Of a stretch of DNA of 64,000 nucleotides, positions 1 to 42,264 are shown in pieces (the first letter of the stretch is position 1; each line of letters starts with the position of its first letter). A program made the translations under genes and the position numbers. The DNA is from Malacoraja senta (lineage: Eukaryota): NCBI GenBank assembly GCA_038087875.1, contig JAXLNO010000618.1, positions 124,001 through 188,000 of the forward strand, written 5' to 3'. The notes beneath the pieces are model-generated. The model made no database searches, had not been told where the DNA came from, and worked only from the letters and a program-made list of their open reading frames with translations.

Positions 1-100
1 AATAACTGAGTATATACAGCAATGTTATTATTACATCTGCTCGTTTGCGTTCTCCTCAACCCAAAACTCACATCGTTTTAAACTGCCAAACTACCCAAAT

Positions 101-371
101 CACAGTGGCACAGATGTTAGAGCTGCTGCCTCACAGAGGCGGAGACCAGGGTTCAATCCTGACCTCGGGTGGTCTCTGGGTGGAGATAGCACGCTCCCTG
201 TGGCCACGAATGAGTGGGGTTGTAGGGTACTTAACCTCCATAAATTGCCTGTAGTGTGTAGGGAGCGGACGGGAAAGTGAGATAACAGAACGAGTCAAAC
301 GGGTGATCAGAGGTCGGCACGGACAGAGGGCTGAACGGCAACTTTCCATGCTGTGTCTCAAAACTAAACTC
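101..371 (+). mobile_element. tRNA-derived SINE (HE1-like) with CR1-type tail
   Basis: A/B-box-like head (gtggcacagatgttag...ggttcaatcc) and tail ending ctcaaaactaaact; duplicate at 55625-55896. Confidence 0.75.
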
Positions 372-613
372 AATCAGAACATCACTATACATGTAAGAAG
401 ATTGACACCTACTCATCATTACAAAACAATAGATACTCTCATTCCCCAATGCCCTTGACATTTGTTATCCTCCAATAACCTTTAGAAAGATGAGGTTCCA
501 TGTCTCAACGCATCCAATGCATGCTTGAGCTCAGTAAATTCCCATTTGCCTTTGCCGAAATAAGGTTTTACAAGATGGATTTTACGGTGACACAAACGCT
601 TTCAACAGAAGTG

Positions 614-758
614 ATGTCTGAACCATGAGCAGGAAAGGAAGAGGGAGGTCCTGTAGTTTCATAAAACACAGAGTGAGACTGGGGAACTCAGTGTGTCGCC
701 GTGCTTGGAGCTTTGCTGCCCAAGTCTCTGGACTCGTTCACCAGTCTCTTCCCACAAG
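614..758 (+). other. Candidate distal 5' exon 1a (start unknown)
   Basis: Ends in CACAAG|GTAGGC; homologous to the 2344-2494 block and to 56138-56282. Confidence 0.45.
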
Positions 759-2266
759 GTAGGCGACCTTACTACAGGTTCACTTCAGGTAAAGGAGTGG
801 TTTAAATGGGATCTAGAAACGGAACACCGTGTTCAATAATTTCTAACGTGTGATATTCCACTCCTACAACCATTCATTAGACTGTTCCAGCCTGTTCTGC
901 TTTAGATTTTACAAGGACATAGAAACGTAATGAATAATGAAGAGAACACAAAATGCTGGAGTAACTCAGCGGGACAGGCAGTTACTCCCGCCCAGTTACT
1001 TTAGCGTTTATATTCGGTATCAAGCAGCATCTGTAGTTCCTTCCAACACGAAACTTTATCAATGTATATTTGTCTCCATTGTTTCCACTAGAAACTTAAT
1101 GAAGCTAAATTACCAGCATCTGCCATTTTACCCATTTGGGCTTTCTTCTTTGTTGCCTGGTCAATCTAATGTATCCATGCTCATGTGGATTTTATTTTTC
1201 CCATTTCTCCGGCAATCCTCTGGGACTGATTGAGGATGTTCAACGTCCTCGCCGTTCTGTTGCCCACTCAATTAAGTGAGGTACAAATGAGTTAAAACCA
1301 TTCTACCGAGAAGCAGGAAGTAAGTGGGTCAAGAATGAAAATGTCGGCGTACAGATGAGTCGTTTCAGTCAAGGCAAACCGACTGAATGTGGTTGTGAAA
1401 TCCCAGATTACAGCAGTGACAATATTCCAGTGGCAGATTCCACAGAGGAATGGTCCTTCCCCGTGTAATTGTGTGCGGTTAATTCTCAAATGGTCCGGTC
1501 CCAGGGTTTTCAAAGTGGCTGTGTTCAATACAACACTTGCCAACTAGCAATTTACTGCAGCATTTCCTTTGCAAATTATTTAGTGTTCCTGTTCCGTTCA
1601 AGATCACACGACGATGAAACATTCTTAAGTATGATTTTATAGATCATCACCACTTCAAATGGTGACATTTGTTTTAGAGAAATGCACGGTGGTTATGCGG
1701 GTTATTCTCGGAGGCTGTGAAGGTCTTGGTGCACTCTGTGAGGTTGAACTAGGAGAACACGGCAAGGTGCAGGAACAATTTGGATGCGAATGAAAATATT
1801 GGCTGGAGGTTCCTCCTTGAGTGAAATTAAAAGCTCGGGAGAAAATTAGCATTCAATATTGTACTAAGTTTGAAAATAATCTATGATCCTGATGATCAAA
1901 TGCACCTCATTTGTAACCCCCTAAACCCACCGTGATCTGATACATTTGGATATAGATTTAAACTGCAGGACCAGCTATAATGGTATATGGACATATAATG
2001 GTATATGGACACACTGATCTGTTTTGTAGTCAATGCCTATTATGTTCTGTTGTGCTGAAGCAAGAATTTCATTGTCCTATCAGGGACACATGACAATAAA
2101 CTCACTTGAACTTGTGCTAAAGCTTTAACATCGCTGCAAGGCGTGAATATTGACCATGTTCCCTTCGTTACAAAACAGCAGATTCCCTCGTTATTTGCCA
2201 CCCACTAATAGCATTTAATATAAGGAGGTTCCAAGTCTAAACGTATCCAATATATTTGTGACCTCA

Positions 2267-2276
2267 GGAAATTCCC
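2267..2276. promoter_or_regulatory. Consensus NF-kB site upstream of exon 1b
   Basis: GGAAATTCCC (reverse complement GGGAATTTCC), about 20 bp downstream of a CCAAT and about 70 bp before the exon 1b block; motif match only. Confidence 0.35.
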
Positions 2277-2343
2277 GATTTGGTTTGTCCAAATTAGCTT
2301 TTACAAGATGATTTTTAATCTGAGGCAAACATTATCAACACAA

Positions 2344-2494
2344 ATGGTGTCTGAATCCTGAGCTGGAAAGAAAGAGGAAGGGTGTTTGCCCTTCCAAAGA
2401 AACTGTGTGAGACTGTGAATCTCAGTGTGTCGCCATGCTTGGAGCTTTGTTGCTCAGTCTCTGTACTCATTCACCATCAGTCTCTTCTCACAAG
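2344..2494 (+). other. Candidate proximal 5' exon 1b (start unknown)
   Basis: Ends in CACAAG|GTAGGC. ATG 2435 (MLGALLLSLCTHSPSVSSHK) is in frame with the leader exon if spliced to 3055. Confidence 0.5.
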
Positions 2495-2717
2495 GTAGGC
2501 GAGCTCACTGCAGTCTCACTTCATGTCAAAGAATGGTTTAAAAGGTATCCACAAACTGAACAATGTTGGATGTCCTGTAAACTGTGGTTTATCACTCATT
2601 CAATCAGTTTGTTCCACTTTAGATTTGACAAGGGCATACACACTTTATTAATCTCGTTTTGCCTCCTTTGTTTCTCACAGCTAAATGACCAGCATATGCC
2701 ATTTTCCTACTGGTTTC

Positions 2718-2975
2718 AATAGACAATAGGTGCAGGAGTAGGCCATTCAATGTTATCATGACTGATCTTCCACAATCAGTACCCCGTTCCTGCCTTCTCC
2801 CCATATCCCATGACTCCGCTATCTTTAAGAGCTCTATCTAACTCTCTCTTGAAAGCATCCAGAGAACCGACCTCCACCGTCCTCTGAGGCAGAGAATCCC
2901 ACAGACTCGCAGCTCTCTGTGAGAAAAAGTGTTTCATCGTCTCCGTTCTAAATGGCTTACCCTTTATTCTTAAAC
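2718..2975 (-). mobile_element. CR1 LINE 3' fragment
   Basis: Reverse complement of the 3' end seen in the long CR1 copies; duplicate at about 58384-58621. Confidence 0.8.
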
Positions 2976-3054
2976 AGTGCTGTACTCAATACAACATTTG
3001 CCAACTACCAATTTACTGATCCTTAGTCTAAAACTGCACCTTATTTCCAAACAG

Positions 3055-3154
3055 AGAATGCACAAAATGAGGCCGAGGTTTCTCTGCAGCAGTTTGCCAC
3101 TTGGTTTGATGTTCGGTTTCTTTGTTTTCCTGCTTCGACCTGTTTCCACACAGA
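3055..3154 (+). CDS. Leader exon, copy 1 ([32 protein letters not shown])
   Basis: Acceptor ttatttccaaacag|, ATG 3058, hydrophobic core, phase-1 donor CAGA|GTAAGT. Confidence 0.85.
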
Positions 3155-6100
3155 GTAAGTGCTTTCTCTTCGCTGGTCACAACCACCTTGCATTAATTAT
3201 CATTGTCCGTGTAAACCCGCACACATTGTCAATCTCGCTTTACTCTCCACGTCCATGAATGTGCTGCTGCCTCCAAATCCACACCATCCTTCCTGGACCT
3301 CCATTCCACATCCCTGTATGTGTTGCTGCCTCACAAATCCACACCATCCTTCCTGGACCTCCATTCCACATCCCTGTATGTGTTGCTGCCTCATAAATCC
3401 ACGCCATCCTTCCTGGACCTCCATTCCACATCCCTGTATGTGTTGCTGCCTCACAAATCCACGCCATCCTTGCTGGACCTCCATTCCACATCCCTGAATG
3501 TGCTGCTGCCTCACAAACCCACACCATCCTTCCTGGACCTCCATTCCACATCGCTGTATGTGTTGCTGCCTCACAAATCCACGCCATCCTTGCTGGACCT
3601 CCATTCCACATCCCTGAATGTGTTGCTGCCTCATAAATCCACGCCATCCTTCCTGGACCTCCATTCCACATCCCTGTATGTGTTGCTGCCTCACAAACCC
3701 ACACCTTCCTTCCTGGACCTCCATTCCACATCCCTGAATGTGCTGCCGCCTCACAAATCCACGCCATCCTTGCTGGACCTCCATTTCTGAGCCCATCCCA
3801 TCAACTCCCTCTCCTTCTCCTGCACCGACACGGTCCTTATCAAAGTCAGAAATGGGCTCCTGTGAGCTTGTTGCAGAGTTAGACTCTCCCTCCTCATCCC
3901 GCTCAGCCTCTGCAGCCTTTGACACGGTTGTCCACACCATCCTTCCCAACATATCCTCACCACAGTCCAGGTGGGTGGAACTGCCCTCGACTTATCGATC
4001 CAGTCGCAGCCCGAGAACCACGCACAATGTCTTCACTTCACGCTCCCACAAAGTTCCTTCAAAACCAGGTGGAGTTCCTCCACTACCCCAACACAACCCC
4101 CTATCCCCACCTACGTCTCCCTCCCTCCCACTCACTCACTTCTCTCATGTGATGAAATATCCCTGCATCAATCAGGCCAGGTTATTCCAGACGACATCTC
4201 TTCACAAACCGTGTCTTCCTCGCTGGGGTTTCCAAGGAAGATCACAACTGTCTGGAATTAAATTCAGTTCAAAATTAATGATTACAGATATGGGGTGGAT
4301 GGGGAAAATGTGTTTTAAATATTAATTCTTCATTGTTCGTATTCGCAACAGCAAATAGAAATCGAATGTATTTCTTGGATAATGGAGGCGACATTGTGTT
4401 AAACGGACAGGACAATGCTGAGAAAGACACTGTTGTTGCCTGGGAATGGAAACCACACTCAGGGAAGGAAATCGGAAAATTGTCGACTTTTAGAAGAACG
4501 GGGCGCGATTGGATCAAAGTGAAGGCCGCTGGCGAGAGTAAAGTGGACTTGTACCCGGAGATGAAAGTGTATTCCCGTACCCTTGATCTGACAATTGATA
4601 AACCCACATTTAAATGGGCGGGAATTTTCACTTTGGCTCAAACAGAACCGAGAAAGCAAATCCTGAAACAATATGAAATATTTGGGATGAAAGGTGAGTG
4701 GGAGCGATAAGGATCAATAATGTTTAATTTATCTCTGTAAATATTGTCACCTATAATGATGAGAGATGGCGGGAATTGTGAGACTTCTTCCACCCGGTGA
4801 AAAGTTAAACAACTGGGGAAGTGTTTTTGTTCATTGATTCTGTAATGATCAGCAGGGGTGATAATAGTTTGATGACTTCACTGGGAACAGCAAATCAATG
4901 AATCGACCCGCAGCGAATACCATGGTCTTCTTGCCTGCACACGGAAGGTGATCGCGGCAAGGTGGTATGGAACCAATGTCTCCATGCAGTGGCCCCGGGG
5001 TGACACTGCTACTTAATGTTACCCTGTGACCAGGTGGATGGAAGTCCATCGCCTGTGGAACATGGGCTCTGCCATAGAGTTCACCTCTTGAGAGCAATCA
5101 GATACACCTAGGAGTGGAAATAGATGCATTTTCAACAGTTTGTGAATATTTGAAACAGAGCATGTGTAAATACAACAACACCTGAATGTTGCCGGTTCCA
5201 CCTGCAGTCACACGGTAAACAGCCGGCATTTCGCTGCGTCAATGTGAGCAGCCACGGGTGTCAGGGTTCTGAGAGCACTTGGGGAGAAGTTGTTCTGACT
5301 TTCAGCTACGTGTCAGCTTTAAGCCCGGTTATTGGATGAACCATGACATCCGCACTCTTCTGAAGTCCAGATTCCGGGCATTCAGGTCTGGGGATGCAGT
5401 GGTCTACAAGAAGTTCAGATACGACCTTGGTAAGGCCATCAAAAGTCCAAAAGGGACTTCTGCTCCAAGCTGGAGGATGAGACGGATGTTCGGCAACTAT
5501 CTTAGGGCTTGAATGCCATCACCTCCTATAAAGGCAAATTCAGGATGTAGCTCAAATGTCAGCGAAACATCACTCCCTGACGAGCTCAATGCGTTCTATG
5601 CACGCTTTGATAGGGAGAACACCGATGTGCCTTCCCGAGCCCCCATTCGCTGTGATGGTATTTCAGTCTCAGTCACAGAGGCCGACGTCAGAAAATCCTT
5701 CAGAGGGGTGAACCCTCGATAAGCACCTGGACCTGATGGTATACCTGGTCGTGTTCTAAAAACCTGTGCGGACCAACTGGCTGGAGTTTTTACGGACATT
5801 TTCAACCTCTCACTTCTGAGGTCTGAGGTTCCCACCTGCTTTAAAAGGGCATCAATTATACCAGTGCCCAAGAAGAGTAAGGTGATGTGTCTCAATGACT
5901 ATCGACCTGTGGCACTAACACCTGTGGTGATGAAGTGCTTTGAAAGGTTGATCATGGCGCAAATCAACTCCTACCTCGACAAAAACCTGGACCCACTGCC
6001 GTTCGCTTACCGCCACAACAGATCAACGGTGGATGCGATCTCGCTGGCCCTCCACTCTGCTCTGGACCACTTGGACAACAAAAACCCATATGTCAGGCTG

Positions 6101-9100
6101 TTATTCATTGATTACAGCTCGGCATTTAATACAATCATCCCCTCCAAGCTGGTTACCAAACTCTCAGATCTGGGTCTCTGTGCATCCCTCTGCAATTGGA
6201 TCCTCGACTTCCTCATTCACAGACCATAGTCTGTTCGTATTGGTGGAAATGTGTCAGCCTCGATAACAATCAGCACGGGAGCACCTCAAGACTGCGTGCT
6301 CAGTCCCCTGCTGTACTCACTCTATACTCATGAGTGCGTAGCCGGACACAGTGCGAACTCCATCATCCAGTTCGCTGACGACACCACTGTTGTGGGACAA
6401 ATCACTGATGGAGACGAGTCAGAGTATAGAAGAGAGATCGAGCAACTGTCCATATGGTGCCAGCACAATAACCTGGCCCTCAACACCAGCAAAACCAAGG
6501 AATTGATTGTGGACTTTGGAAGGGGTAGGATGGGGACCCACATTCCCGTTTATATCAACGGGTCGATGGTGGAAAGGGTCAAGAGCTTCAAATTCCTGGA
6601 CGTGCATATTTCCGAAGATCACTCCTGGTCCCAGAACACTGATGCAATTATAAAGCAAGTACATCAGCGCCTCTACTTCATGAGCAGATTACGGAGAGTC
6701 GGTTTGTCAAGGAGGACTCTCTCTAACTACTACAGGTGCACAGTAGAGAGCATGATGACCGGTTGCATCGTGGCTTGGTTCGGCAACTTGAGTGTCCAGG
6801 AGCGGAAAAAGCTACAAAAAGTAGTAAACACTGCCCAGTCCATCATCGGCTCTGACCTCCCTTCCATCGAGGAGATCTATCGCAGTCGCTGCCTCAAAAA
6901 GGCTGGCAGCATCATCAAGGACCCACACCATCCTGGCCACACACTCATCTCCCCGCTACCTTCAGGTAAAAGGTACAGGACCCTGAAATCTGCAACATCC
7001 AGGTTCAGGAACAGCTGCTTCCCCACAGCCATCTGGTTATTAAACACAACTTCAAACAAACTCTGAACTATAACAGCCTATTGCACTTTATCTGTTTATT
7101 TATGTGTGCATATATGTATATATATTCTATGGTACATGGACACACTGATCTGTTCTGTATTTATGCCTACAATATTCTGTTGTGCTGCAGCAAGCAAGAA
7201 TGTCATTGTCCCATCTGGGACTTGACTTGTACAAACCACTACTCACTCTGAATCTCATTGATCTGTTTTTCACAGTTGAGGCAAGTCCACAGAGGCCTCT
7301 GCTGGGCAGTGACGTCACACTCAGCTGCACCATCTCCAGACTCTCAGATACAGTCAGTCTTCACTGGAGACCCATGGACTCATCCCAGCAGAACAGGAGC
7401 AACACTGATCAGATCCGCCTGGATAACACGGTCTATCTGATGGTTCAACACGTTACAGTGGGGGATGGGAAGCTGTATGTGTGTGATGTGCAGGAAAACG
7501 GAAACATTGTTCACACAAGTAATGGAGATTTTACTGTAGAGAACGGTGAGTGTAAACACCTCCCATTGGATATCAAGTAGACACTTGTATCACGGTGCTT
7601 CTTGTAATATTATGTGTGTGCCCTGTGAAGAACTGTGGCAGTGACCAACTGCTCTCTAGTATAAAATGCTGCAATGATCAGGGAGAAGTTTACAGAAAGT
7701 CTCTCTCTCTGTGGAGCAGCTGCCTGCTTGTCTCTGTGTGACAGACACACAGCACAGGAGGGGGATGTCTTTCTGTAACCATTCTTCTGTCAAGTATTTT
7801 GTCAGTTTATCTTGCCATCAATGCTCCAGTATCTGAGACTGAGATACTGATACAGGACTCATGTCAAAGTGTCAGATAGAAAGTGTAGTCACCATGACAA
7901 CCACCAGCACTTGCTGCTCACACTCACACTGGGGGTCCCGGCCCACACATCAGCACTGAACAACAATCCATCCCCTCTCCCCTCACTGACCCTTCTCTCC
8001 GAGTCTGGTGTTGCTTGAAGTGATTCCAGCTGCTGCAGACTCTGGCTTCGGATCAGCATTCAACTGGGAGCAGGACCCGGGAACAGGGAAGGACAGGGAA
8101 TCAATGGGTGTGAATGGGAGAGGGATGGTGGGAATTATGGGAATGAAGGGACGGGAAGACCCGACCCACTTGAAGTGCCAACCTGTCCGGGTCAGTCCCC
8201 ACGCAGGCATCCTCTGGGCTGCTTCTGTCCGCAGCCTGAACCTGCACCACCTCCTGCAGACAGACTGACAGAGACATTCACCTCCCAGACCGCTCTCGGG
8301 AGTCTCCGGGAGGTTTCATTCCATCCCGGGAGATTCCCGGACAGTCCGGGTGTGGGGGCGAACCGAATGTTGAAATGTAGAGTGGAATATCCAAACTTCA
8401 CTGCAATTTACTGCCGTACAGGACATTGTATTTTATAAAGATCTGATGAGTTTAGTGCGGCATTCATGAAAGATGTTACATTTGAAACTTGATCAGCTGA
8501 ACAAAACACCACGAATGTTTATAAGAATACGGTTGAGAATCTCTGTATGGCACGGTAACTGTAATACTGAAAGGAGTTATCCTCTGTCTCTCTGATACAG
8601 ATTTATATAGGGAGATATACACACTTTACCGCTCCAGCACAGATCACAGTGAACTTCACCTGGTTTGTTCTGTGAGTTATGGTGATAGCTATTCCCGTGC
8701 TGAGTGGACCTGGACACCTCATCACCTTCAACAACACAAAGTAATAGCATCTGCAAACCGTTCTCAGCCCATCAATGTCAAAGGGACCGACTTCAGGAAT
8801 CGACTGGTGACCTCAGGGAAACCCTTCGATGGCGAGGATTTCAGTGTGAGGATTGTCCCCGTTTTGTTTCAAGATGCCGGAGTTTACGCATGTTTTCTGG
8901 AATCATATCCATTTCTCACCATTGATCTAATCACAGTGAAAGGTACGAGACAGAATGTTGCCACTGAGTTTACTGATGAACTTATTGTTTAAAATGTAAA
9001 CAACCTGCTTGTTTCCACAGTCACAGCTGAACCGTCTGATGCAGTGACTGAGGGAGACACCGTTACCCTGACCTGCTCTGTGTCTCACGTCATTGGGTCA

Positions 9101-12100
9101 ATGAGACTGGTTTGGATCAATGGCGATGGCAAAAGTGTTGGAGAAAAGACACTGACTGTGGAAGAGAAATCACAGAGTCTGGTTATTCAGAAAGCTGAGA
9201 GAGGCAGAGGGAACTGGAGATGTGGTTTGTTTCATCAAGACCTGCCCCGGCTTTTTGTCCCGTACTATCAGGAGCCCCGTGGTAAGTGATAAGGGTTTGT
9301 TCTTCATACTTAGAGTCATGATTGAGTTTTGATGTCGCTTATTGATCCTGAAATTTGAGTGGAATATTTTCTTCCAGTTTGAGTAGTCTAACTGTTATGA
9401 TCAATGAATTCTCAAATTTCAAATAACACTTCCCGAACCCCACTTCTCCCCCCCCCTTCATTGTGCACGCATTTATCCCACCACCCAGTTATCCTATTCT
9501 CTTCCCTTCCTCTTTCAACTCATCTCCCACCCCTTCCAATTGCAGAGTTTTCCTTTTATGTTCTTGCTCCACTTCCACCCATATCCCTCCCTCTGTTACT
9601 GATCTGACTGTAGATCAGTCAGTATTAGTTGACCTGATCTATGTCATGTTTTACTGCATGCCGCTGTGTACTCAAACAGTCATCATATTATCTGGTCTGT
9701 TAGTCCAGCCTCTAGTTAGATTCGTTGCTGAGCTTGAGCTTACAACACCTAAGTATTTGAGCTCTGTGTGTTTACTATAACAAACAACTTCTTCTTATGT
9801 ATGGATCCTGTTATTACACATGTTTACACTGACAACCTTTTGTCTCCATTTCACCCCTCCATTTTGTCATTATCTCCATCCATCTACTCATCACCATTCC
9901 CCACCTGTATCCACCTATCACTCACCATGCTTTGTCTCGTGCCTACTTCCCTTCCCCAGTTGTCACTCTCCCATTCCATCAGTCTGAGAATGCATCCTGA
10001 CATGAAACGTCATCAATCCATTCCCTCCACAGATGCTGCCTGACCCATTGAGTTTCTCCAACACTTTGCGTTTGATCAACATTCCACAATCTGCAGTTTC
10101 TTGTGTCTCCATGGAGACCCACTGGTCAACGTGGACAGATTGCTGCAGAGGGCCTGTTTCCATGCTGTTCCATGATGATGAATTATAACGTACAACTTAG
10201 TAAAGATTAATTCTCTGCAATATTGCTACTGACAAGGTCAGTGAAAAATTATTGTCCAAAATTTACACATTTGTTCTCTTTTCCTACAGGAAGTGGACAT
10301 TATATGTACTTTTTCCATCAGGAAGGCAACTTTGTATTGAAAGGACCAGACAGTCCTGGAAATGGCCCCATTGACTTGGAATGGAGGCCACACTCAGGGC
10401 AACAAACCACAAAGCGATTGGCCACTTTCCACAGAGAAGATCAGCAGTGGGACGTACAATGGAGTGATGAGTACATTCAAATACCAGGCATTTCCCAGAG
10501 GATGCATGCGGACTGGGGTACCCTTAATCTGAGGATCAGGATGCCCACATTCAAACTTGCAGGACTGTTCACCTGGACTCAAACAGAGTCCGCTGGGAAA
10601 ATCCTGAGACAGTGGGAACTATTTGGGATCAAAGGTAATAGAGTCATAGTGTCACACAGCACTGAAACAGGCCCTTTGGCCCAATTCATCCATACTGACC
10701 AACTACCCATCTAAACATCCCATTTGCCCTCATTTGGCCCATATCCCTTCAACCTTTTTTCCATCTACCTGTTTAAATGCCCTTTAAATGCTGTACCTGC
10801 ATCAAACACTTCCTCTGCTCGATCTTTCCATAAAGTATGTTTAGGTACCACACTCTTTGTCAAAACTGCCCCTAATATTAAGGGGTATATCAAATCTGCC
10901 CCTCTCACCTTAAACATGTACTAACTAGTTGTTGATTCCCCAACCCTGGACAAAAGACCATGTGCGTTTACTATAGATATGCCTCTCATGATTTTATTCA
11001 CTCCCATATAATCTCTGTTAAAGACATCCAAGAAATATAATGTCTGAAGAAGGGTCTCAACCTGAAACGTCACCTATCCATGTTCGCTAGAGTTCAAAGG
11101 TCTTTTATTGTCACGTGTACCAATTAAGGGGCAGTGATATTCATATTAACAGACCTGCTGAATTACTCCTGCACTTTATGTCCTTTTATATATTAACCAG
11201 CATCTGCAGTTCTGTGTTTCTACTATACTAAAAACATCCCTACCTGGAAGTGTTGATGTGGGAGACGAGGGGGCGAGGGGGACAGGTCGTCACTACCAGG
11301 AAGTGTTGATGTGGGAGACGATGGGGCGAGGGGGACAGGTGGTCACTACCAGGAAGTGTTGATGTGGTAGACGAGGGGGTGAGGGGGACAGGTGGTCACT
11401 ACCAGGAAGTGTTGATGTGCGAGACGAGGGGGCGAGGGGGACAGGTGGTCACGACCAGGAAGTGTTGATGTGGGAGACGAGGGGGCGAGGGGGACAGGTG
11501 GTCACTACCTGGAAGTGTTGATGTGGGAGACGAGGGGGCGAGGGGGACAGATGGTCACTACCTGGAAGTGTTGATGTGGGAGACGAGGGGGCGAGGGGGA
11601 CAGATGGTCACTACCAGGAAGTGTTGAAGACATCACTGAGCACGGTAGCTCAACATTCAGCCGACTGTCTGTCTGCAGGAAAAAGACAATTCTGCCCACA
11701 GTAGTTCAGAAAGCTGTTGGTGAACTGAACCACATGTGTCTGTTTCCACAGTTGAGGCCGACTCACCGAGGCCAGTGATGGGCAGTGACATCACCCTCAG
11801 CTGTACCATCTCCAGACTCTCAGATACCATCAGTCTTCACTGGAAACCAAGAGGCTCATCTCAGCAGAACAGGAGGAGCAACACTGATCAAATCCATCTG
11901 AATAACGCCGTCTATCTGATGATCCAACATGTTGGAGCAGGAAATCCCAATCTGTACACATGGGAAGTGCAGGAAAATACCTCCATTGTTCTCACTGGAG
12001 ACTCCAATGTCGAAGTGGATCAGGGTGAGTCCAAAGCTGCCTTGCAGCAGGTATTAAATAGATCTTGATATCAAACTGTTCCACATGTTGTATAGTGAGC

Positions 12101-15100: not shown

Positions 15101-18100
15101 CTTCGTTATCTCGACACAGAGTTCTTGTCACGTTGCTATTCTTTTTGGATAACTTTTAACATTTCATGTCTTACTGCAAGTAGAGCTCAATCATAGACAT
15201 TTCCTGCAAACCTCTTGTCCATGCCTATAAGGTCACTTCTATTGTAAGTAGTCCAGGTCTCTGAAGCACATGGGAGCACATGGATCACTACTGCTGGCAG
15301 ACCACTGACCAAGTCCTATGTTGGCCATCTCATTGAAGGTGATCGGGAATTTCATCATCAATGTCTGTCCTTGTTGATAAGGGTCTCCACAGGTATGAAA
15401 ACTGGTCCAGTAGTATGAAAACCAGTGTGTCACTGTGAACCTTTTTGACAGAGGTCAGTATAGTAAGGTGGGCAGCTTGGTGGAAGATCTTTGCCATAAC
15501 ACCCAAACTGTGCCCCTTAAAGATCACAAAAGTAGTGAAAATCATCTTACAAATAGTTGTACAAGTTTCTTTCCCCTGTTCTGATGCTGTAAAACATTAC
15601 AGCGGTTGAAGCATCCACAGTAACTTCACCAAAGGCTGCCGTGTGAGAACAGAAGATGTGGGGGAGGGAATACTGATGTCTTCACCTTGTCTGACCATGG
15701 TGGCGCGGTGGTAGGGTTGCTGCCTTACAGCGCCAGGGACCCGGGTTCAATCCTGACTACAGGTGCTGTCTGTATGGAGTTTGTACCTTCATCCCGTGCC
15801 CTATGTGGGTTTTCACGAGGATTTCCGGTTTTCTCCCAAATTCCAAAGATGAACAAGTCTGTAGGTTAATAGGCTTGGTTTAATTGTATGTTGTCCCTGG
15901 TGTGTGTAGGATAGTGTTAGTCTGTGGGAATCGCTGGTTGGTGTGGACTCGGCGAGCCGAAGGGCCTGTTTCCGCGCTGTATCTCTAAACTAAACACGCC
16001 CTTTCCTCCCAATCCCACCCATCCATTAATCCCTGCCCTTCATGTGGCCCCAAGCCTCGGTGAAAGACATTTTGTACAATGCTGACAGAAGGCAAAGCAC
16101 TGATCCCTAACAGAGGAAGATCCTGTAAACACCCAGGCACAAAGAAACAATCTCCACCACACATAGATCAATGAAGAGTCAGTGAAGCACAGTGGAAAGT
16201 ATCAATGTCCCAACAGAAACATTTTAATTCCTCACAGATAATCACATCATCCAATCATAGAATTGTGGAATGGTTGTAGCACAGAAGGTGGCCATTTGAC
16301 CCATCATATCCATGCTAACTCTCATCCAGAGCAACTCGCTAATTCTACCCCCTCTCCTTTTGCCATTACATTGCAGCTTTTTCATCACTATATATTTCTC
16401 CAATTCTCTCTGGAAAGCCACGATAGAACCCAGCTCCCCAACTGATGCAGACAGTACACTTCAGACTCCAACTGCCTGCTGCCTAAAAAGATTTTCCTCA
16501 AGTCATTCTAACATGTTTTCCCCTTTATTTTAAACCTATAACTTTTTGTGCTCAGCCTTTCCACTGAAGGGAGCATCCTTCCACAATCCATTCTGTTCAG
16601 ACTGAATAAATGATGCATAAATGAACAATTATGCCATTGTGCAGATAACTATTAATGACTATGATATAGTTGGGATCACGGAGACATGGCTCCAGGGTGA
16701 CCAAGGCTGGGAGCTGAACATCCGGGGATATTCAATATTCAGGAGGGATAGACAGAAAGGAAAAGGAGGTGGGGTAGCGTTGCGGGTTAGAGAGGAGATT
16801 AACACAATAGAAAGGAAGGACATTAGCTTGGAGGATGTGGAATCGATATGGGTAGAGCTGCGAAACACTAAGGGGCAGAAAACACTAGTGGGTGTTGTGT
16901 ACAGGCCACCTAACAGTAGTAGTGGAGTTGGGGATGGCATCAAACAGGAAATTAGAAATGCGTGCAACAAAATAAAACAGTTATAATGGGTGACTTCAAT
17001 CTACATATAGATTGGGTGAATCAAATTGGCAGGGGTGCTGAGGAAGAGGATTTCTTGGAATGTATGCGGGATAGTTTTCTAAACCAACATGTAGAGGAAC
17101 CAACGAGAGAGCAGGCTATTCTAGACTGGGTATTGAGTAATGAGGAAGGGTTAGTTAGCAGTCTTGTTGTGCGTGGCCCCTTGGGCAAGAGTGACCATAA
17201 TATGGTTGAGTTCTTCATTAGGATGGAGAGTGACATTGTTAATTCAGAAACAAGGGTTCTGAACTTAAAGAAAGGTAATTTTGAGGGTATGAGACGTGAA
17301 TTTGCCAAGATTGACTGGCAATTGATTCTTAAAGGGTTGACGGTGGATATGCAATGGAAGGCATTTAAAGACTGCATGGATGAACTACAAAAATTGTTCA
17401 TCCCAGTTTGGCAAACGAATAAATCAGGGAAGGTAGTGCATCCGTGGATAACAAGGGAAATCAGGCATAGTATCATAACAAAAGATAAAGCGTACAACTT
17501 AGCCAGAAAAAGCAGCCTACCAGAGGACTGGGAGGAATTCAGAGTCCAGCAGAGGAGGACAAAGGGCTTAATTAGGAAAGGGAAAATAGATTATGAAAGA
17601 AAACTGGCAGGGAACATAAAAACTGACTGCAAAAGATTTTATAGATATGTGAAGAGAAAGAGATTAGTTAAAACAAATGTAGGTTCCTTGCAGTCAGAAA
17701 CAGGTGAATTGATCATGGGGAACAACGACATGGCAGACCAATTGAATAACTACTTTGGTTCTGTCTTCACTAAGGAAGACATAAATAATCTGCCGGAAAT
17801 AGCAGGGGACCGCGGGTCAAATGAGATAGAGGAACTGAGTGAAATCCAGGTTAGCCGGGAAGTGGTGTTAGGTAAATTGAATGGATTAAAGGCCGATAAA
17901 TCCCCAGGGCCAGATAGGCTGCATCCCAGAGTACTTAAGGAAGTAGCCCCAGAAATAGTGGATGCATTAGTGATAATTTTTCAAAACTCCTTAGATTCTG
18001 GAGTAGTTCCTGAGGATTGGAGGGTAGCTAATGTAACCCCCTTTTTAAAAAGGGAGGGAGAGATAAAACGGGGAATTACAGACCAGTTAGTCTAACATCG

Positions 18101-21100
18101 GTAGTGGGGAAACTGCTAGAGTCAGTTATTAAAGATGGGATAGCAGCACATTTGGAAAGTGGTGAAATCATTGCACAAAGTCAGCAAGGATTTACGAAAG
18201 GTAAATCATGTCTGACGAATCTTATAGAATTTTTCGAGGATGTAACAAGTAGAGTGGATAAGGGAGAACCAGTGGATGTGTTATATGTGGACTTTCAGAA
18301 GGCTTTCGACACGGCCCCACATAAGAGATTAGTATACAAACTTAAAGCACACAGTATTGGGGGTTCAGTGTTGATGTGGATAGAGAACTGGCTGGCAAAC
18401 AGGAAGCAAAGAGTAGGAGTAAACGGGTCCTTTTCAGAATGGCAGGCAGTGACTAGTGGGGTACCGCAAGGCTCAGTGTTGCGTCCCCAGCTATTTACAA
18501 TATATATTAATGATTTGGACGAGGGAATTGAATGCAACATCTCCAAGTTTGCGGATGACACGAAGCTGGGGGGCAGTGTTAGCTGTGAGGAGGATGCTAG
18601 GAGGCTGCAAGTTGATTTGGATAGGCTGGGTGAGTGGGAAAATGCATGGCAGATGCAGTATAATGTGGATAAATGTGAGGTTATCCACTTTGGTGGCAAA
18701 AACAGGAAAGTAGACTATTATCTAAATGGTGCCCGATTAGGAAAAGGGGCGATGCAACGAGACCTGGGTGTCATGGTACACCAGTCATTGAAAGTAGGCA
18801 TGCAGGTGCAGCAGGCAGTGAAGAAAGCGAATGGTATGTTAGCATTCATAGCAAAAGGATTTGAGTATAGGAGCAGGAAGGTTCTACTGCAGTTGTACAG
18901 GGTCTTGGTGAGACCACACCTGGAGTATTGCGTACAGTTTTGGTCTCCAAATCTGAGGAAAGACATTCTTGCCATAGAGGGAGTACACAGGTTCACCAGA
19001 TTGATTCCTGGGATGTCAGGACTTTCATATGAAGAAAGACTGGATAGACTCGGCTTGTACTCGCTAGAATTTAGAAGATTGAGGGGGGTTCTTGTAGAAA
19101 CTTACAACATTCTTAAGGGATTGGACAGGCTAGATGCAGGAAGATTGTTCCCGATGTTGGGGAAGTCCAGGACAAGAGGTCACAGTTTAAGGATTAAGGG
19201 GAAATCCTTTAGGACCGAGATGAGAAAAACCTTTTTTCACACGGAGAGTGGTGATTCTCTGGAACTCTCTGCCACAGAAGGTAGTTGAGGCCAGTTCATT
19301 GCCTATATTTAAGAGGGAGTTAGATGTGGCCCTTGTGGCTAAAGGGATCAGAGGGTATGGAGAGAAGGCAGGTACAGGATACTGAGTTGGATGATCAGCC
19401 ATGATCATATTGATTGGCGGTGCAGGCTCGAAGGGCCGAATGGCCTACTCCTGCACCTATTTTCTATGTTTCTATGATGTGATGAAAGAGCATTATTGAC
19501 TCTTGTCTTCAAACTCTCTCTTCAGTGTGCCATGGTAATAACTGGACAGAGAACAGCCATTAAAAGAATCTCAATTATACCAGCCATGTTTACTGTTTAG
19601 TTTAGAGATACAGCGCGGAAACAGGCCCTTCGGCCCACCGGGTCCACGCCAACCAGCGATCCCCGCATAATAACACTATCCTACACCCACTAGGGACAAT
19701 TTTTACATTTACCATGCCAATTAACCTACAAACATGTACCTCTTTGGAGTGTGGAAGGAAACAGAGGATCTCGGAGAAAACCCATGCAGGTCCCGGGGAG
19801 AAAGTACAAACTCCGTACTGACAGCACCCGTAGTCGGGATCGAGCCCGGGTCTCCGGCGCTGCATTCACTAAGGCAGCAACTCTACCGCTGCGCCACCGT
19901 GCCGCATTCATTGTGTCATCTCTTTGTGACATGTTTATAGTTTGACTTGCCGATTCAACTGCTTCAATGCACCATCTGATGTGATTATTTGACTGAACAC
20001 AGCAACCTGCTCCCTGATGGTCACTGTGTGCTTAAGGTTGGTGTTATTAATCCTTACTCCTGGCGAGCAGCAGTCTCCCCCTGGCAGAAGACAACAGGGC
20101 TCTGACTATAGTCGGCTGAGAGTCCACTGAGGAATGAAGGCTTTGGTTGTCCTCTGCCTGTGCCTCAGTGCCAGTAAAACCCTGCTCCGTCAGCCGCTGC
20201 ACCAAGGGAGAGGCCACCCCAACCCACACCGACCCCACTGTGGTGTCCCCACCTCCCAGATTGGAAATCTGTGCTCCCGGCTGAGCAGAAGCCTCCCCAT
20301 GTACGCTCATCAACACAGTCTCACTATGGAGCAGAACTGAAGTTGAACTTTATTTTACAAGGGTCGCGCACACCAGCCTCTCCATCCTTTGGCCTCATTG
20401 CAGACTGATGCTTTTGGGTGTTGAGCTGTCCTTAGAGGGCAGGACATATCAATCAGTGAGTGAATAGATTAGTTGGTGTGTGGAATTAATGCATGGATCA
20501 ACCATCTCCAATTTTACACTAAAAACACATGAAGTTGTGCTCATTAGGATTGCAATAATAATGTGTTCAACCTCATTGACATCAGTAGGCAATGGTTACA
20601 TGCACAATACAGTTTTAGTACTTGAAGACCAAAATTAATTTTAGGAGTTGAAAATCGGAATTAAAAATAATAATAATAATCAGCAGGACAGATAGGAACT
20701 GTGAAAGAGGAACAAGTCCAGCCATGATCGCATTAAATGGCGGTGCTGGCTCGAGGGGCTGAATGGCCTACTCCTGCACCTATTGTCTATTGGCAAAGAT
20801 CCTTTCTTTGAATCTGACAATGTTTTATTCATCATAAAACATGAACTCACTTCTTTCCCTTTCCACGGATACTGCTCAAACGGCTGAGTATTTGTAACGT
20901 TTACAGTTCTTGTGCTCCTGGTTAGAGAGGATTGAAGCTGGAGGGCAATATCCACTCTGTTGTCAGCAGTGTTCATTCAACCATTGTTCCAGGCTTAGAC
21001 TTTGATAGACATTTGTCCACTGTACAGTGGGAAGTGTCACAGCTGAATCAGCTACTTTATCAACCAACCATCAGCTCCCATCTCCTGCCTGAGAAATGTC

Positions 21101-21917
21101 AGCTGATTGTAACCAAGAAATAGAAACTTGTGTGAATGTTTACAGTCTCTAACTGATGGCTACTGAGGCAAGTTGTGGCTCTCTGATCTTTGTGAGTAAG
21201 GTTAATTAATCTGGGGAAAAAAAGACACAATGTGCTGGAGTAACTCAACGGGTCAGGCGGAATCTCTGGAGAACATGGATAGGTGAGGTTTTGGATCTTG
21301 ACCCTACTTCAGACTAAAGGGCTGCGACCCGAAATATCACCTGCCTAACCTGCTGAGTTTCTCCAACACTTTGTGTCTTTTATTGGTAAACTCTCATCTG
21401 CAGTACCTTGTGTCTCAGTGAATCTGGATCACAAGTTAAACTCAAGACTTCTGATCTAAATTAGTCAGTGTGGTTAATGCCTGGTCTTTGGGGGAGCTTT
21501 TGAATGATGTCCATTTATTCTACAAATGCGAACTCTGTGTTTATTATTTTGACAGGGAATTATACTTTTATATACATCATTGTTGGAATTATCGGGAGTC
21601 TGGCTGTTCTCATCGTCATTATACTGGCAGTGGTGTGGTGTCAAAGAAAGCGCAAGCCTACAGGTAAAGTACATGAAGACATCCTTAATGCAGCACAGAT
21701 TCCCCAAATTATCAATGACAATGTTATCATTGTTACAAGGAGAAAAGAACAATATATTTTGGATAAGAAAAGTATCTGTTTGTGCATATGTTGTTGAGAA
21801 ATTGATTTCAGACTTTTTGTGTTCAATTAAAGCATTATTTATGCAATGTGGATTGTCTACCTACCTGCGTTGCCATGAGGAGTCTGCTGTATGATTTCAG
21901 GTGCTGTTCTGCAATGA
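3058..21917 (+). CDS. Multi-exon type I membrane receptor with eight Ig domains, (V*-C2-V-C2)x2, CD4/LAG-3-like; copy 1, about 887 aa
   Basis: Eleven exons join with GT-AG boundaries, all phase 1, with no internal stop (97+342+270+342+261+345+273+339+270+108+17 = 2664 nt). Signal peptide, Ig motifs, a hydrophobic TM helix and a basic stop-transfer motif are present. The family assignment rests on V-C2-V-C2 order and WxC F-strand motifs and is less certain than the exon structure. Confidence 0.82.
3246..3785 (+). repeat. 60-bp minisatellite, 9 copies
   Basis: Unit ccattccacatccctgtatgtgttgctgcctcacaaatccacgccatccttcctggacct; explains ORFs 3200-3952, 3240-3767 and 3320-3790. Confidence 0.95.
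3790..4150 (+). mobile_element. Old L2-type LINE reverse transcriptase fragment
   Basis: Degenerate TDTVLIKV...[12 protein letters not shown]...GGTAL resembles L2 TETALxKV...LSAAFDTVDH...GTAL; frameshifted; duplicate near 59320-59690. Confidence 0.6.
4352..4693 (+). CDS. Ig domain 1 exon (V-like, no cysteines)
   Basis: Acceptor gcaacag|, donor AAAG|GTGAGT, phase 1/1. Contains DIVLNG, WEW and WAGIFTL at the B, C and F strand positions; homologous to domain 5. Confidence 0.88.
5300..7250 (+). mobile_element. 5'-truncated Rex1/Babar-type LINE in the D1-D2 intron
   Basis: RT motifs [35 protein letters not shown](D)[12 protein letters not shown] and FADDT, with stops and frameshifts. Confidence 0.88.
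7276..7545 (+). CDS. Ig domain 2 exon (C2)
   Basis: Acceptor tttttcacag|, donor AACG|GTGAGT; VTLSC...LHW...LYVC. Confidence 0.92.
8601..8942 (+). CDS. Ig domain 3 exon (V)
   Basis: Acceptor ctgatacag|, donor AAAG|GTACGA; LVC...WTW...DAGVYAC...DLITVK. Confidence 0.92.
9021..9281 (+). CDS. Ig domain 4 exon (C2 with WxC)
   Basis: Acceptor gtttccacag|, donor CGTG|GTAAGT; VTLTC...LVW...NWRC. Confidence 0.92.
10290..10634 (+). CDS. Ig domain 5 exon (V-like, no cysteines; paralogue of domain 1)
   Basis: Acceptor ttcctacag|, donor AAAG|GTAATA; shares MYF, EWxPHSG, PTFKxAGxFT, QTE and FGxK with domain 1. Confidence 0.88.
11240..11627 (+). repeat. 53-bp G-rich minisatellite, 7 full copies plus a partial
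   Basis: Unit ctaccaggaagtgttgatgtgggagacgagggggcgagggggacaggtggtca with a 53-nt period. Confidence 0.95.
11752..12024 (+). CDS. Ig domain 6 exon (C2; paralogue of domain 2, F-strand Cys replaced by Trp)
   Basis: Acceptor gtttccacag|, donor CAGG|GTGAGT; [13 protein letters not shown]...LYTW. Confidence 0.9.
12355..13040 (-). mobile_element. Rex1/Babar-type LINE 3' fragment
   Basis: Minus ORF 12665-12988 ([15 protein letters not shown]...[14 protein letters not shown]) resembles the C-terminus of the 5300-7250 element. Confidence 0.75.
13150..13553 (+). mobile_element. CR1 LINE fragment
   Basis: Matches the ORF2 C-terminal region of the long CR1 copies (ctggtgagaccacacctggagtattg). Confidence 0.85.
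13664..14002 (+). CDS. Ig domain 7 exon (V; paralogue of domain 3; not in the supplied ORF track)
   Basis: Acceptor ctctcttgcag|, donor ACAG|GTAGGA. Hand translation is open: [35 protein letters not shown]...DAGVYTC...ELITVT. Confidence 0.9.
14810..15079 (+). CDS. Ig domain 8 exon (C2 with WxC; paralogue of domain 4)
   Basis: Acceptor tttccacag|, donor AACA|GTAAGT; ITLTC...LVW...KWTC. Confidence 0.92.
15695..15995 (+). mobile_element. tRNA-derived SINE (HE1-like)
   Basis: Head ggtggcgcggtggtag...ccgggttcaatcc; tail gggcctgtttccgcgctgtatctctaaactaaac. Confidence 0.8.
16639..19476 (+). mobile_element. 5'-truncated CR1 LINE in the D8-TM intron
   Basis: Endonuclease (GITETWL, GVVYRPP, MGDFN) and RT ([17 protein letters not shown]) motifs, frameshifted; tttctatg tail. 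Confidence 0.95.
19595..19903 (-). mobile_element. tRNA-derived SINE (HE1-like)
   Basis: Reverse complement of the SINE at 15695. Confidence 0.8.
21556..21663 (+). CDS. Transmembrane exon ([35 protein letters not shown])
   Basis: Acceptor ttattttgacag|, donor ACAG|GTAAAG, phase 1/1; about 23 hydrophobic residues followed by C-QRKRK. Confidence 0.9.
21901..21917 (+). CDS. Probable last coding exon (GAVLQ-stop)
   Basis: Acceptor atgatttcag|, phase matches the TM exon, followed 50 nt later by AATAAA; alternative tails are possible. Confidence 0.55.
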
Positions 21918-28069: not shown

Positions 28070-31000
28070 GACTCAAATAGAGAATGCTATTATACAGTGT
28101 GTGAGGCAGGAGGCAGAGAAGGAAAGCACTCAGACCCAACATGTAGGGTGGAAAGAAGAAAACAATAATAAACAGAGAATAAGAGGTGGTGAGGTTCTTA
28201 AATGGGTGAGCAGAGAAACAGAGGGGTGTAAAATGCGGGCGGAAGCAATAGGTAGCAAGGTGAAAAGTAAAAGTGGCAGGCAGACAAATCCACGGCAAAA
28301 ATCAAAAAGAGTCACTTTTCAACATAATTGTATAAGGGGTAAGAGCGTTGTAAAAACAAGCCTGAAGGCTTTGTGTCTCAATGCAAGGAGCATTCGTAAT
28401 AAGGTGGATGAGTTGAACGTGCAGATAGCAATTAATGATTATGATATAGTTGGGATCACGGAGACATGGCTCCAGGGTGACCAAGGCTGGGAGTTCAACA
28501 TCCAGGGATATTCAATATTTAGGAGGGATAGAGAGAAAGGAAACGGAGGTGGGGTAGCGTTGCTGGTTAGAGAGGAGATTAACGCAGTGGGAAGGAAGGA
28601 CATTAGCTTGCAGGATGTGGAATCGGTATGGGTAGAGCTGCGAAACACTAAGGGGCAGAAAACGCTGGTGGGTGTTGTGTACAGGCCACCTAGCAGTAGT
28701 AGTTAAGTTGGGGATGGCATCAAACAGGAAATTAGAAATGCGTGCAACAAAGGCAAAACAGTTATAATGGGTGACTTCAATCTACATATAGATTGGGTGA
28801 ATCAAATTGGCAGGGGTGCTGAGGAAGAGGATTTCTTGGAATGTATGAGGGATAGTTATCTAAACCAACATGTAGAGGAACCAACGAGAGAGCAAGCTAT
28901 TCTAGACTGGGTATTGAGTAATGAGGAAGGGTTAGTTAGCAGACTTGTTGTGCGTGCCCCCTTGGGCAAGAGTGACCATAATATGGTTGAGTTCTTCATT
29001 AGGATGGAGAGTGACATTGTTAATTCAGAAACAACGGTTCTGAACTTAAAGAAAGGTAACTTTGAGGGTATGAGACGTGAATTGGCCAAGATTGACTGGC
29101 AATTCGTTCTAAAAGGGTTGACGGTGGACATGCAATGGAAGGCATTTAAAGACTGCATGGATGAACTACAAAAATTGTTCATCCCAGTTTGGCAAAAGAA
29201 TAAATCAGGGAAGGTAGTGCATCCGTGGATAACAAGGGAAATCAGGGATAGTATCAAAGCAAAAGATGATGCGTACAAATTAGCCAGAAAAAGCAGCATA
29301 CCAAAGGACTGGGAGAAATTCAGAGACCAGCAGAGGAGGACAAAGGGCTTAATTAGGAAAGGGAAAATAGATTATGAAAGGAAACTGGCAGGGAACATAA
29401 AAACTGACTGCAAAAGTTTTTATAGATATGTGAAGAGAAAGAGATTAGTTAAAACAAATGTAGGTCCCTTGCAGTCAGAAACAGGTGAATTGATCATGGG
29501 GAACAAGGATATGGCGGACCAATTGAATAACTACTTTGGTTCCGTCTTCACTAAGGAAGACATAAATAATCTGCCGGAAATAGCAGGGGGCCGCGGGTCA
29601 AAGGAGATGGAAGAACTGAGTGAAATCCAGGTTAGTCGGGAAGTGGTGTTGGGTAAATTGAATGGATTAAAGGCCGATAAATCACCAGGGCCAGATAGGC
29701 TGCATCCCAGAGTACTTAAGGAAGTAGCTCCAGAAATAGTGGATGCATTAGTGATAATTTTTCAAAACTCTTTGGATTCTGGAGTAGTTCCTGAGGATTG
29801 GAGGGTAGCAAACGTAACCCCACTTTTTAAGAAGGGAGGGAGAGAGAAAACGGGGAATTACAGACCAGTTAGTCTAACATCGGTAGTGGGGAAACTGCTA
29901 GAGTCAGTTATTAAAGATGGGATAGCAGCACATTTGGAAAGTGGTGAAATCATTGGACAAAGTCAGCATGGATTTACGAAAGGTAAATCGTGTCTGACGA
30001 ATCTTATAGAATTTTTCGAGGATGTAACTAGTAGAGTGAATAGGGGAGAACCAGTGGATGTGTTGTATCTGGACTTTCAGAAGGCTTTCGACAAGGTACC
30101 ACATACGAGATTAGGATACAAACTTAAATCACACGGTATTGGGGTTTCAGTATTGATGTGGATAGAGAACTGGCTGGCAAACAGGAAGCAAAGAGTAGGA
30201 GTAAACGGGTCCTTTTCACAATGGCAGGCAGTGACTAGTGGGGTACCGCAAGGCTCAGTGCTGGGACCCCAGCTATTTACAATTTATATTAATGATCTGG
30301 ACGAGGGAATTGAAAGCAACATCTCCAAGTTTGCGGATGACACGAAGCTGGGGGGCAGTGTTAGCTGTGAGGAGGATGCTAGGAGACTGCAAGGTGACTT
30401 GGATAGGCTGGGTGAGTGGGCAAATGTTTGGCAGATGCAGTATAATGTGGATAAATGTGAGGTTATCCACTTTGGTGGCAAAAACGGGAAGGCAGACTAT
30501 TATCTAAATGGTGGCCGATTAGGAAATGGGGAGATGCAGCGAGACCTGGGTGTCATGGTACACCAGTCATTGAAAGTAGGCATGCAGGTGCAGCAGGCAG
30601 TGAAGAAAGCGAATGGTATGTTGGCCTTCATAGCAAGAGGATTTGAGTATAGGAGCAGGGAGGTTCTACTGCAGTTGTACAGGGCCTTGGTGAGACCACA
30701 CCTGGAGTATTGCGTACAGTTTTGGTCTCCAAATCTGAGGAAGGACATTATAGCCATAGAGGGAGTGCAGAGAAGGTTCACCAGACTGATTCCTGGGATG
30801 TCAGGACTTTCATATGAAGAAAGACTGGATAGACTTGGCTTATACTCGCTAGAATTTAGGAGATTGAGAGGGGATCTTATATAAACGTACAAAATTCTTA
30901 TGGGGTTGGACAGGCTAGATGCAGGAAGATTGTTCCCGATGTTGGGGAAGTCCAGGACAAGGGGTCACAGCTTAAGGATAAGGGGGAAAACCTTTAAGAC

Positions 31001-31270
31001 CGAGATGAGGAAAAACGTTTTCACACAGAGAGTGGTGAATCTCTGGAACTCTCTGCCACAGATGGTAGTTGAGGCCAGTTCATTGGCTATATTTAAGAGG
31101 GAGTTAGATGTGGCCCTTGTGGCTAAAGGGATCAGGGGGTATGGAGAGAAGGCAGGTATGGGATACTGAGTTGGATGATCAGCCATGATCATATTGAATG
31201 GCGGTGCAGGCTCGAAGAGCCGAATGGCCTACTCCTGCACCTATTTTCTTTGTATCTATGTATCTATGTA
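28070..31270 (+). mobile_element. Near-complete CR1 ORF2 copy inserted in the BEL 3' LTR
   Basis: ORFs 28050-28706 and 28767-30884 are in one frame, broken by TAA at 28704 and 30882; EN and RT motifs; (tatc)tatg tail. Confidence 0.95.
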
Positions 31271-32642: not shown

Positions 32643-32787
32643 NNNNNNNNNNNNNNNNNNNNNNNNNNNNNNNNNNNNNNNNNNNNNNNNNNNNNNNNNN
32701 NNNNNNNNNNNNNNNNNNNNNNNNNNNNNNNNNNNNNNNNNNNNNNNNNNNNNNNNNNNNNNNNNNNNNNNNNNNNNNNNNNNNNNN
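32643..32787. other. Assembly gap (145 N)
   Basis: Run of N. Confidence 1.
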
Positions 32788-41770: not shown

Positions 41771-42264
41771 GGCTAACTCTTTTGTCTTGCTGATGTTGAG
41801 GGATGGATTGTTATCCTGACCATAGGTGCAGGAGTGGGCCATTCGGCCATTCACGACAGAAGGTTCTCAATGTCTTTCCCATATTCTATCTCATCGTTGC
41901 TGCTCATGTGGCTGAAATACTGTTCTGACCAGTGGACGGACGTCTGGATCCCACTGGCCTGAGACCCGGCCACAAGTTGTGGGTGGCAAGGTCATGACCC
42001 CGAGGGACATTGGTGTCAAGGGTCACGGTGGAGGGAATGTTCTGACCAATTCTAACGTCTGAGAAGTGAATAGTGATGATTTGTTAATTCATCATGGCTG
42101 AACCAGGTGGGCTCACTTCTGACTAGACTTTACTGTGGACATTTAAACAGGAACAGTAAACTTTCTTTATTAACAATGAATGACCCAGAGAAAGGAGAAT
42201 GTTACTCTTGGAAGTTCATAGTCACAGCATGGAAACAGGCCCTTCCTTCGGCCCAACTTGTCCG

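Follow-up and report, generated by a model that had tools for sequence, protein, structure and literature searches.

Clustered differences in the distal domain of two copies of a skate receptor gene, and signs of diversifying selection across their family

The window analysed here is a stretch of 64,000 nucleotides (nt) from the skate Malacoraja senta (assembly GCA_038087875.1, contig JAXLNO010000618.1, positions 124,001–188,000 of the forward strand), vertebrate DNA with introns, fragments of long interspersed nuclear elements (LINEs) and satellites. It contains two copies of the first exons of a gene that is predicted to encode a receptor with many immunoglobulin (Ig) domains. The first and membrane-distal domain, D1, differs between the copies mainly by amino-acid changes, most of which fall in two short patches, and D1 exons of related skates show more nonsynonymous than synonymous change, with the strongest signal at sites that include the cores of both patches. 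The explanation favoured here, with moderate confidence, is that the copies are tandem paralogues of one receptor gene, that D1 of the whole family is under diversifying selection at a few sites, and that the differences within the pair are a local expression of that selection.

The family would be a large, unnamed group of elasmobranch membrane receptors built from V-C2-V-C2 modules of the kind found in CD4 and LAG-3. Selection would be centred on a few D1 positions, among them 51 and 52 in the turn between strands C′ and C″, and 74 and 75 in the loop between strands D and E. The clustered differences of the pair would then be the local outcome of a family-wide diversification of D1. The variants in the patches may have been supplied by point substitution, by short conversion between paralogues or by a mixture of the two, and then kept by selection.

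The two copies and where they differ

The duplicated block occupies positions 1–8492 (copy 1) and 55525–64000 (copy 2), both on the forward strand. When aligned, its copies differ by 277 substitutions in 7,977 bases (3.5%), plus indels. Each copy has a leader exon (3058–3154 and 59070–59166), a D1 exon (4352–4693, termed Wa, and 59887–60228, termed Wb) and a D2 exon (7272–7541 and 62790–63059), the last of which serves as the control domain in the codon tests described below. D1 is a phase-1 exon of the V type, and Wa and Wb have the same splice sites (acceptor caacag/CA, donor AAG/gtgagt) and intact frames. The gene of copy 1 runs on through domains D3 to D8 and then to a transmembrane exon near 21.5 kb. 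D5–D8 are an older internal repeat of D1–D4, and the pairs D1/D5, D2/D6, D3/D7 and D4/D8 are 40–67% identical in amino acids.

A first-pass annotation, made by hand count, reported 19 differences between Wa and Wb in 342 nt, and the recount agrees exactly. Twelve codons change the amino acid (11, 19, 29, 50, 51, 52, 69, 71, 73, 74, 75 and 95), and three are purely synonymous (1, 10 and 40). Eight of the 12 changes are found in two patches. Patch 1, codons 50–52 (4501–4509; 60036–60044 in copy 2), reads GRD in Wa and SDY in Wb, within TGRDW and TSDYW. Patch 2, codons 69–75 (4558–4578; 60093–60113 in copy 2), reads EMKVYSR in Wa and GMYVNPY in Wb. Four codons, 50, 51, 71 and 75, are changed at two bases.

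The sequences around D1 are more alike, and here too the earlier counts hold. D2 has 4 differences in 270 nt, the leader exon has a single synonymous one in about 97 nt and encodes the same peptide in both copies, and the introns that flank D1 differ at 10 of 398 positions (2.5%) in the upstream 400 nt and at 4 of 399 (1.0%) downstream. The excess in D1 over its 400-nt flanks has an odds ratio of 3.3 (p = 9e-4), and that over the non-repeat sequence of the block, which is 1.7% diverged, has p = 5e-5. Differences within D1 are also clustered beyond chance by permutation, with 5 of them in 7 nt (p = 0.002) and 7 in 19 nt (p = 0.002). A caveat is the uneven divergence of the block. Among its 342-nt windows, 17% hold 19 or more differences, and all of these lie in transposon-derived or indel-adjacent sequence. 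The LINE-derived part of the intron has substitution clusters as well, although smaller ones.

Fold of D1

An AlphaFold model of D1, based on an alignment of 28 sequences (predicted local distance difference test score 77, predicted template-modelling score 0.70), has strands at residues 4–7, 14–16, 27–34, 41–49, 52–56, 70–72, 79–81, 90–97 and 103–111. This is the nine-strand sandwich of the V-set, with C′ and C″ present. It had been proposed from the sequence that the patches map to the C′–C″ and D/DE regions of a V fold, and the model bears this out. Residues 50–52 are at the turn between strands 41–49 and 52–56, and residues 69–75 take in strand 70–72 (D) and the loop before strand 79–81 (E). 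By standard V-fold topology, the patches would correspond to loops like those of complementarity-determining region 2 (CDR2) and hypervariable region 4 (HV4), located at the membrane-distal tip.

There is no cysteine in D1 of either copy, and the canonical V-set disulfide between strands B and F is therefore absent from both. The V domains of CD2 and SLAM also lose this cysteine pair. Such a loss is known in some domains of CD4 and LAG-3 as well (PMC10768021).

Ranked by Z-score, V domains of catfish NITR10/11 (Z 10.7) are the closest in fold to the D1 model. Other matches are to the T-cell receptor V beta domain, the sodium-channel beta-4 subunit and MPZL, that is, to the V-set in general. 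By template-modelling score, D3 of CD4 is at the top (0.63) among the 30 reviewed-protein models listed. A profile of D1 compared with the sequences of solved structures gave no significant chain and only generic matches to the E–F strands.

According to PMC10768021, human CD4 contacts class II molecules of the major histocompatibility complex (MHC) by residues 35, 40, 43–48, 59, 60 and 63, which belong to strands C′, C″ and D. By strand position, this contact region is the region of the fold where both D1 patches lie, a correspondence that serves as an analogy only. By the same analogy, the patch loops may form a ligand-contact surface.

Selection within the pair and across the family

The first-pass annotation suggested diversifying selection on the basis of the two window copies. 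The pair alone does not show such selection. Nei–Gojobori counting gives a nonsynonymous divergence (dN) of 0.060 and a synonymous divergence (dS) of 0.052, a ratio of 1.14, and maximum likelihood gives a dN/dS of 2.1. The 15.5 nonsynonymous versus 3.5 synonymous changes are not a significant excess (binomial p = 0.43). With the flanking introns taken as the neutral standard, the nonsynonymous divergence of the pair is raised (odds ratio 3.5, p = 9e-4); the synonymous divergence of D1 also tends to lie above that of the flanks, with a marginal p = 0.05.

Support for the proposal comes at the level of the skate family, and there it extends to sites 51, 52, 74 and 75 in the patch cores. The genes closest to that of the window belong to three other skates, Amblyraja radiata, Leucoraja erinacea and Rhinoraja longicauda. 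Their loci yielded nine D1 exons that are intact and keep the splice sites; together with Wa and Wb, these give an alignment of 11 exons from four skates. This was analysed with a Goldman–Yang likelihood code of our own that reproduces the likelihood and dN/dS (omega) of IQ-TREE. With the added sequences omega is above 1: the one-ratio model (M0) gives 2.09 for D1, and the likelihood-ratio test (LRT) statistic against omega = 1 is 8.5 (p = 0.0035). Model M2a is strongly preferred over M1a (LRT 41.9, p = 8e-10), with a positive-selection class that has 14.5% of the sites and an omega of 7.6. Sites 13, 44, 51, 52, 74 and 75 have posterior probabilities above 0.95 under M2a, and those in the patch cores (51, 52, 74 and 75) are above 0.99. 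Sites 50, 71 and 95 are at 0.6–0.75.

The result is robust in several respects. Under a model that allows double-nucleotide hits the LRT is still 33.8, and it is 55.5 on a tree made from the flanks and 39.3 on a tree of D1 without the patches. Equal and F1x4 codon frequencies leave the D1 answer unchanged, such that omega exceeds 1 under three frequency models. Removal of both window copies leaves an LRT of 26.8, with sites 13, 52, 74, 75, 78, 88 and 100 called, and these overlap the window differences above chance (p about 0.02). The D2 control has an omega of 0.81, and M2a is not significant for it.

Comparisons between species point in the same direction. The dN of D1 is 0.07–0.08 between the window and Amblyraja, above an intron divergence of 0.044–0.050, and it is 0.13–0.145 between the window and Rhinoraja, where the introns are 0.086–0.089 diverged. 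Between species, the dN of D1 is also above its dS. Within Amblyraja and within Rhinoraja, paralogues are 0.8–2.8% apart in their introns and 4–6% apart in D1.

Origin of the patch differences

With the nine D1 exons of the other skates as outgroups, 6 of the 19 differences are derived in copy 1, 6 are derived in copy 2 and 7 are ambiguous. Both copies have derived states in both patches. In patch 1, Wa has gained R51 and D52, and Wb has gained S50; in patch 2 the gains are Y73 and R75 in Wa, and G69 and Y71 in Wb. Codon 74 is altered in both, to S in copy 1 and to P in copy 2. Codons 73–75 of Wa show a first-base change in three consecutive codons.

In addition to the non-significant excess within the pair, several results weigh against the explanation by family-wide selection. 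When changes are counted without a model in five independent sister pairs, the ratio of nonsynonymous to synonymous proportions (pN/pS) is 1.43, which is not significant (p = 0.11). As many as 85% of the D1 sites are at an omega of about 1, and thus the domain is weakly constrained overall. Recombination can inflate the LRTs of site models, and the pairwise homoplasy index (PHI) test for it has p = 0.056 at short range and is not significant at longer range, with 45 informative sites and little power. An Amblyraja locus (L006) has exactly the codons 73–75 of Wb (AAT CCC TAT), and the AGT/TAT alternatives at codon 75 are also found in Amblyraja and Leucoraja; codon 75 of Wa, CGT, is one step from AGT. 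Sharing of patch states across species can mean conversion or old lineages and not new substitutions.

This raises the question of whether the patches were copied in from family members elsewhere in the genome, by conversion of short tracts, or are old D1 variants with homogenised flanks. The differences of the pair would then be a product of shuffling and not a record of substitution after duplication, though the family could be under selection all the same. Such an origin is considered unlikely, but it accounts for a number of findings. The patches are diverged at 12 of 30 nt (40%) as against about 1.8% in the flanks, and the family, with 93 or more protein clusters, is large. Besides the identity with the Amblyraja locus, the S/P alternatives at codon 74 recur in other species, as do the AGT-type and TAT states of codon 75. 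Contigs from a related skate (see below) have TAT at codon 71 like Wb, and one of them also has TAT at codon 73 like Wa. The raised synonymous divergence of D1, and the similar introns but more diverged D1 exons of Amblyraja and Rhinoraja paralogues, fit this origin too.

On the other side, the window holds no donor. D1-like exons were sought across it, and only the two D1 copies and D5 were found. The D5 exon (10289–10633, forward strand), an older D1-like V domain of the eight-domain gene 1 with about 40% amino-acid identity, was rejected as a donor, as its codons match neither patch. Lineage-specific states right between the patches and next to them (G12, V56 and the ESKV segment) are common to Wa and Wb, and conversion would thus need tracts shorter than about 30 nt, or donors that were homogenised to the same degree. 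R51, D52 and R75 of Wa and S50 of Wb were not found in any of the other D1 exons and proteins sampled, and Y73 of Wa and Y71 of Wb are absent from the codon alignment and appear only in the contigs of the related skate. As noted, the PHI test is not significant. Moreover, the rate class found in the family (omega 7.6 with a dS of 0.05) already predicts a divergence of about 40% at such sites. The first-pass annotation had named conversion from a third, older paralogue as the event that could undo its proposal; the paralogue domain within the gene is ruled out, and the recurrence of patch states in paralogues of other species leaves part of that objection in force.

Perhaps, instead, D1 is unconstrained or decaying, and the clusters are complex multi-nucleotide mutations that arose with no selection for change. 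This is very improbable. It would fit an omega of about 1 at most D1 sites and of 0.81 in D2, the frameshifts in two of 13 D1 exons (both in relatives) and the substitution clusters of the LINE-derived intron. However, omega for the whole exon is significantly greater than 1 under all three codon-frequency models, and the signal outlasts the double-hit model. The first-base changes in codons 73–75 of Wa are unlike events of adjacent-base mutation, the same sites vary in independent species, and both copies have intact frames and splice sites.

One property of patch 2 concerns glycosylation. The S/Y alternatives at codon 75 toggle an N-x-S sequon (NTS) in the D–E loop, which separates the loci L001, L002 and L003 from L005, L006, L008 and the window. 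The sequon at codons 73–75 is absent from both window copies, which have YSR and NPY.

Relatives, transcripts and the question of alleles

An exhaustive HMMER search with D1 found 27 proteins, every one from a shark, ray or skate; ten of these were looked up, and each is labelled 'uncharacterized' at its source. A wider search gave 93 protein clusters of 340–1033 residues from about 20 elasmobranch species. Nearly all have the names 'uncharacterized' or 'hypothetical', and a few were named automatically, for example as obscurin-like or vascular cell adhesion protein 1-like. Pfam assigns no family to D1. A literature search found no description of this receptor family, and the sequence records leave it unnamed.

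The D1 exon is intact in 11 of 13 sampled. The two frameshifted exons are from Leucoraja (L009:9907-10235, with a 1-nt deletion) and Amblyraja (L007:9776-10133, with a 28-nt insertion), and they point to a birth-and-death turnover in the family. Codons 61–64 read ESKV in the window and GSNV in Rhinoraja, and they are absent from all Amblyraja and Leucoraja copies; this indel sets the species of the window apart from Amblyraja and Leucoraja.

Contigs from four public runs were placed on positions 3790–5270 of the window. Those from RNA of a related skate join the leader exon to D1 at 4352/4353, the predicted acceptor, and run from the end of D1 into D2. Thus members of the family are spliced as predicted and are expressed, at least in this related skate. 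The deepest run has hundreds of variant contigs over the region, and 40 of 179 variant places were listed. The exact haplotype of Wa or Wb was not recovered from the public runs, the other runs being thin and their contigs fragmented in the patches. In one run (X1), word depths over 3790–5270 are in the thousands, far above the expectation for a whole-genome run of its size, and this run may come from a library that was enriched, built from clones or pooled.

It is quite improbable, although worth considering, that the two copies are haplotypes of one locus that the assembler placed in tandem. In that case D1 would be polymorphic between alleles, still possibly under balancing selection. A gap of 145 undetermined bases (32643–32787) does lie between the block copies, neither exact haplotype appears in the public runs, and the window cuts both outer ends of the repeat, which allows for a unit of up to 55.5 kb. 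Yet 23 kb lie between the gap and the first known position of copy 2, and the copies are separated not only by 3.5% substitutions but also by large indels, which include a 479-bp difference in minisatellite length and others of 327 bp and 118 bp. Divergence of this order with large indels is far above ordinary heterozygosity. In addition, D1 exons are found in tandem, 11–30 kb apart, in the Amblyraja and Rhinoraja assemblies.

Comparison with known receptors

The V-C2-V-C2 module of CD4 and LAG-3, which are co-receptors for MHC class II, is present twice in the window gene (D1–D4 and D5–D8), which has eight domains as compared with four. Members of the CD4/LAG-3 family have a W-x-C motif in D2 and D4 (PMC10768021). 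The window gene has this motif in D4 (NWRC) and D8 (KWTC), but not in D2 (LYVC) or D6 (LYTW). LAG-3 is the top match among sequences of solved structures for a skate homologue (P0038); the match is weak, with D3–D4 in register (E = 9e-6), and CD276 and PD-L1 score close to it.

The cytoplasmic tails have Cx(C/H) in CD4 and (F/Y)xxL(D/E) in LAG-3. An open frame at 21504–21794 encodes a transmembrane segment and a putative tail, which has no FxxL(D/E). Only read-through of the exon would give this tail a CLCICC end; CLC and CIC resemble the CxC motif of CD4 that binds Lck. The window gene differs from both CD4 and LAG-3 in that it has no established Lck or FxxL tail motif, has no disulfide in D1 and belongs to a multigene family of at least 93 unnamed shark and ray clusters. 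It is a relative of CD4 and LAG-3 in architecture, and is neither of the two.

Ligand-contact loops are under positive selection in KIR/LILR, in the NITRs of fish, and in the N domains of CEACAM, D1 of SIRP alpha and D1 of primate CD4. The skate genes resemble these multigene systems in having tandem paralogues, birth and death, and broken copies, as well as an omega above 1 in exposed distal V loops, with neighbouring domains and introns that remain similar. They differ from them in that the D1 hot spots are CDR2-like and HV4-like, not CDR1-like or CDR3-like, and in the absence of canonical cysteines.

A diverged exon beside homogenised introns is a pattern of the MHC. Between paralogues of the same species in three skates, divergence is 3 to 7 times higher in the D1 exon than in the introns on either side of it, and dimorphic states are common to several skate species, both of which are MHC-like. 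In contrast to the MHC pattern, the skate copies are paralogues as assembled, and their excess of synonymous divergence is marginal.

Do the D1 tips make up a germline-encoded, variable recognition repertoire like that of KIR or NITR? This is a tentative possibility. Selection would maintain diversity in the CDR2-like and HV4-like loops, the introns and inner domains would be homogenised, and the ligands would be either polymorphic self molecules (e.g. MHC) or those of pathogens. Of the living vertebrates with adaptive immunity based on the MHC, cartilaginous fish are the oldest. D1 of the present family varies at the loops that, by strand position, CD4 uses for contact with MHC class II, which makes the family a candidate variable recognition system, of an innate type, in sharks and rays. 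CD4 and LAG-3 of cartilaginous fish were pinned down only in 2023 (PMC10768021). Positive selection on the distal domain is well known in multigene immune receptors, and the present findings extend a familiar rule to a new family. Residues 51, 52, 74 and 75, and also 13, represent concrete targets for binding studies.

Repeat sequences in the window

The biggest single difference between the block copies is a minisatellite with a 60-bp unit in intron 1, which has nine units in copy 1 (3246–3785) and one in copy 2 (59258–59318). The intron between D1 and D2 contains a LINE reverse-transcriptase fragment (5273–7066; about 61046–62581 in copy 2) that is common to both copies. The fragment is about 5% diverged, three times as much as the unique intron sequence, and has substitution clusters of its own. 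Its extra divergence could stem from ectopic conversion with other LINE copies or from a higher mutation rate.

Two further LINEs, at 16639–19476 and 28419–31260, have long reverse-transcriptase and endonuclease frames and are 94.7% alike; one of them is located in gene 1, where it separates D8 from the transmembrane exon. Another copy, the third, is inverted (47713–49164) and about 78% alike to this pair. Between the gene copies there is also a satellite of 4.5 kb (42256–46822), with about 134 copies of a 34-bp unit that are about 93% alike, and a 0.9-kb array of a 26-bp unit at 40166–41058.

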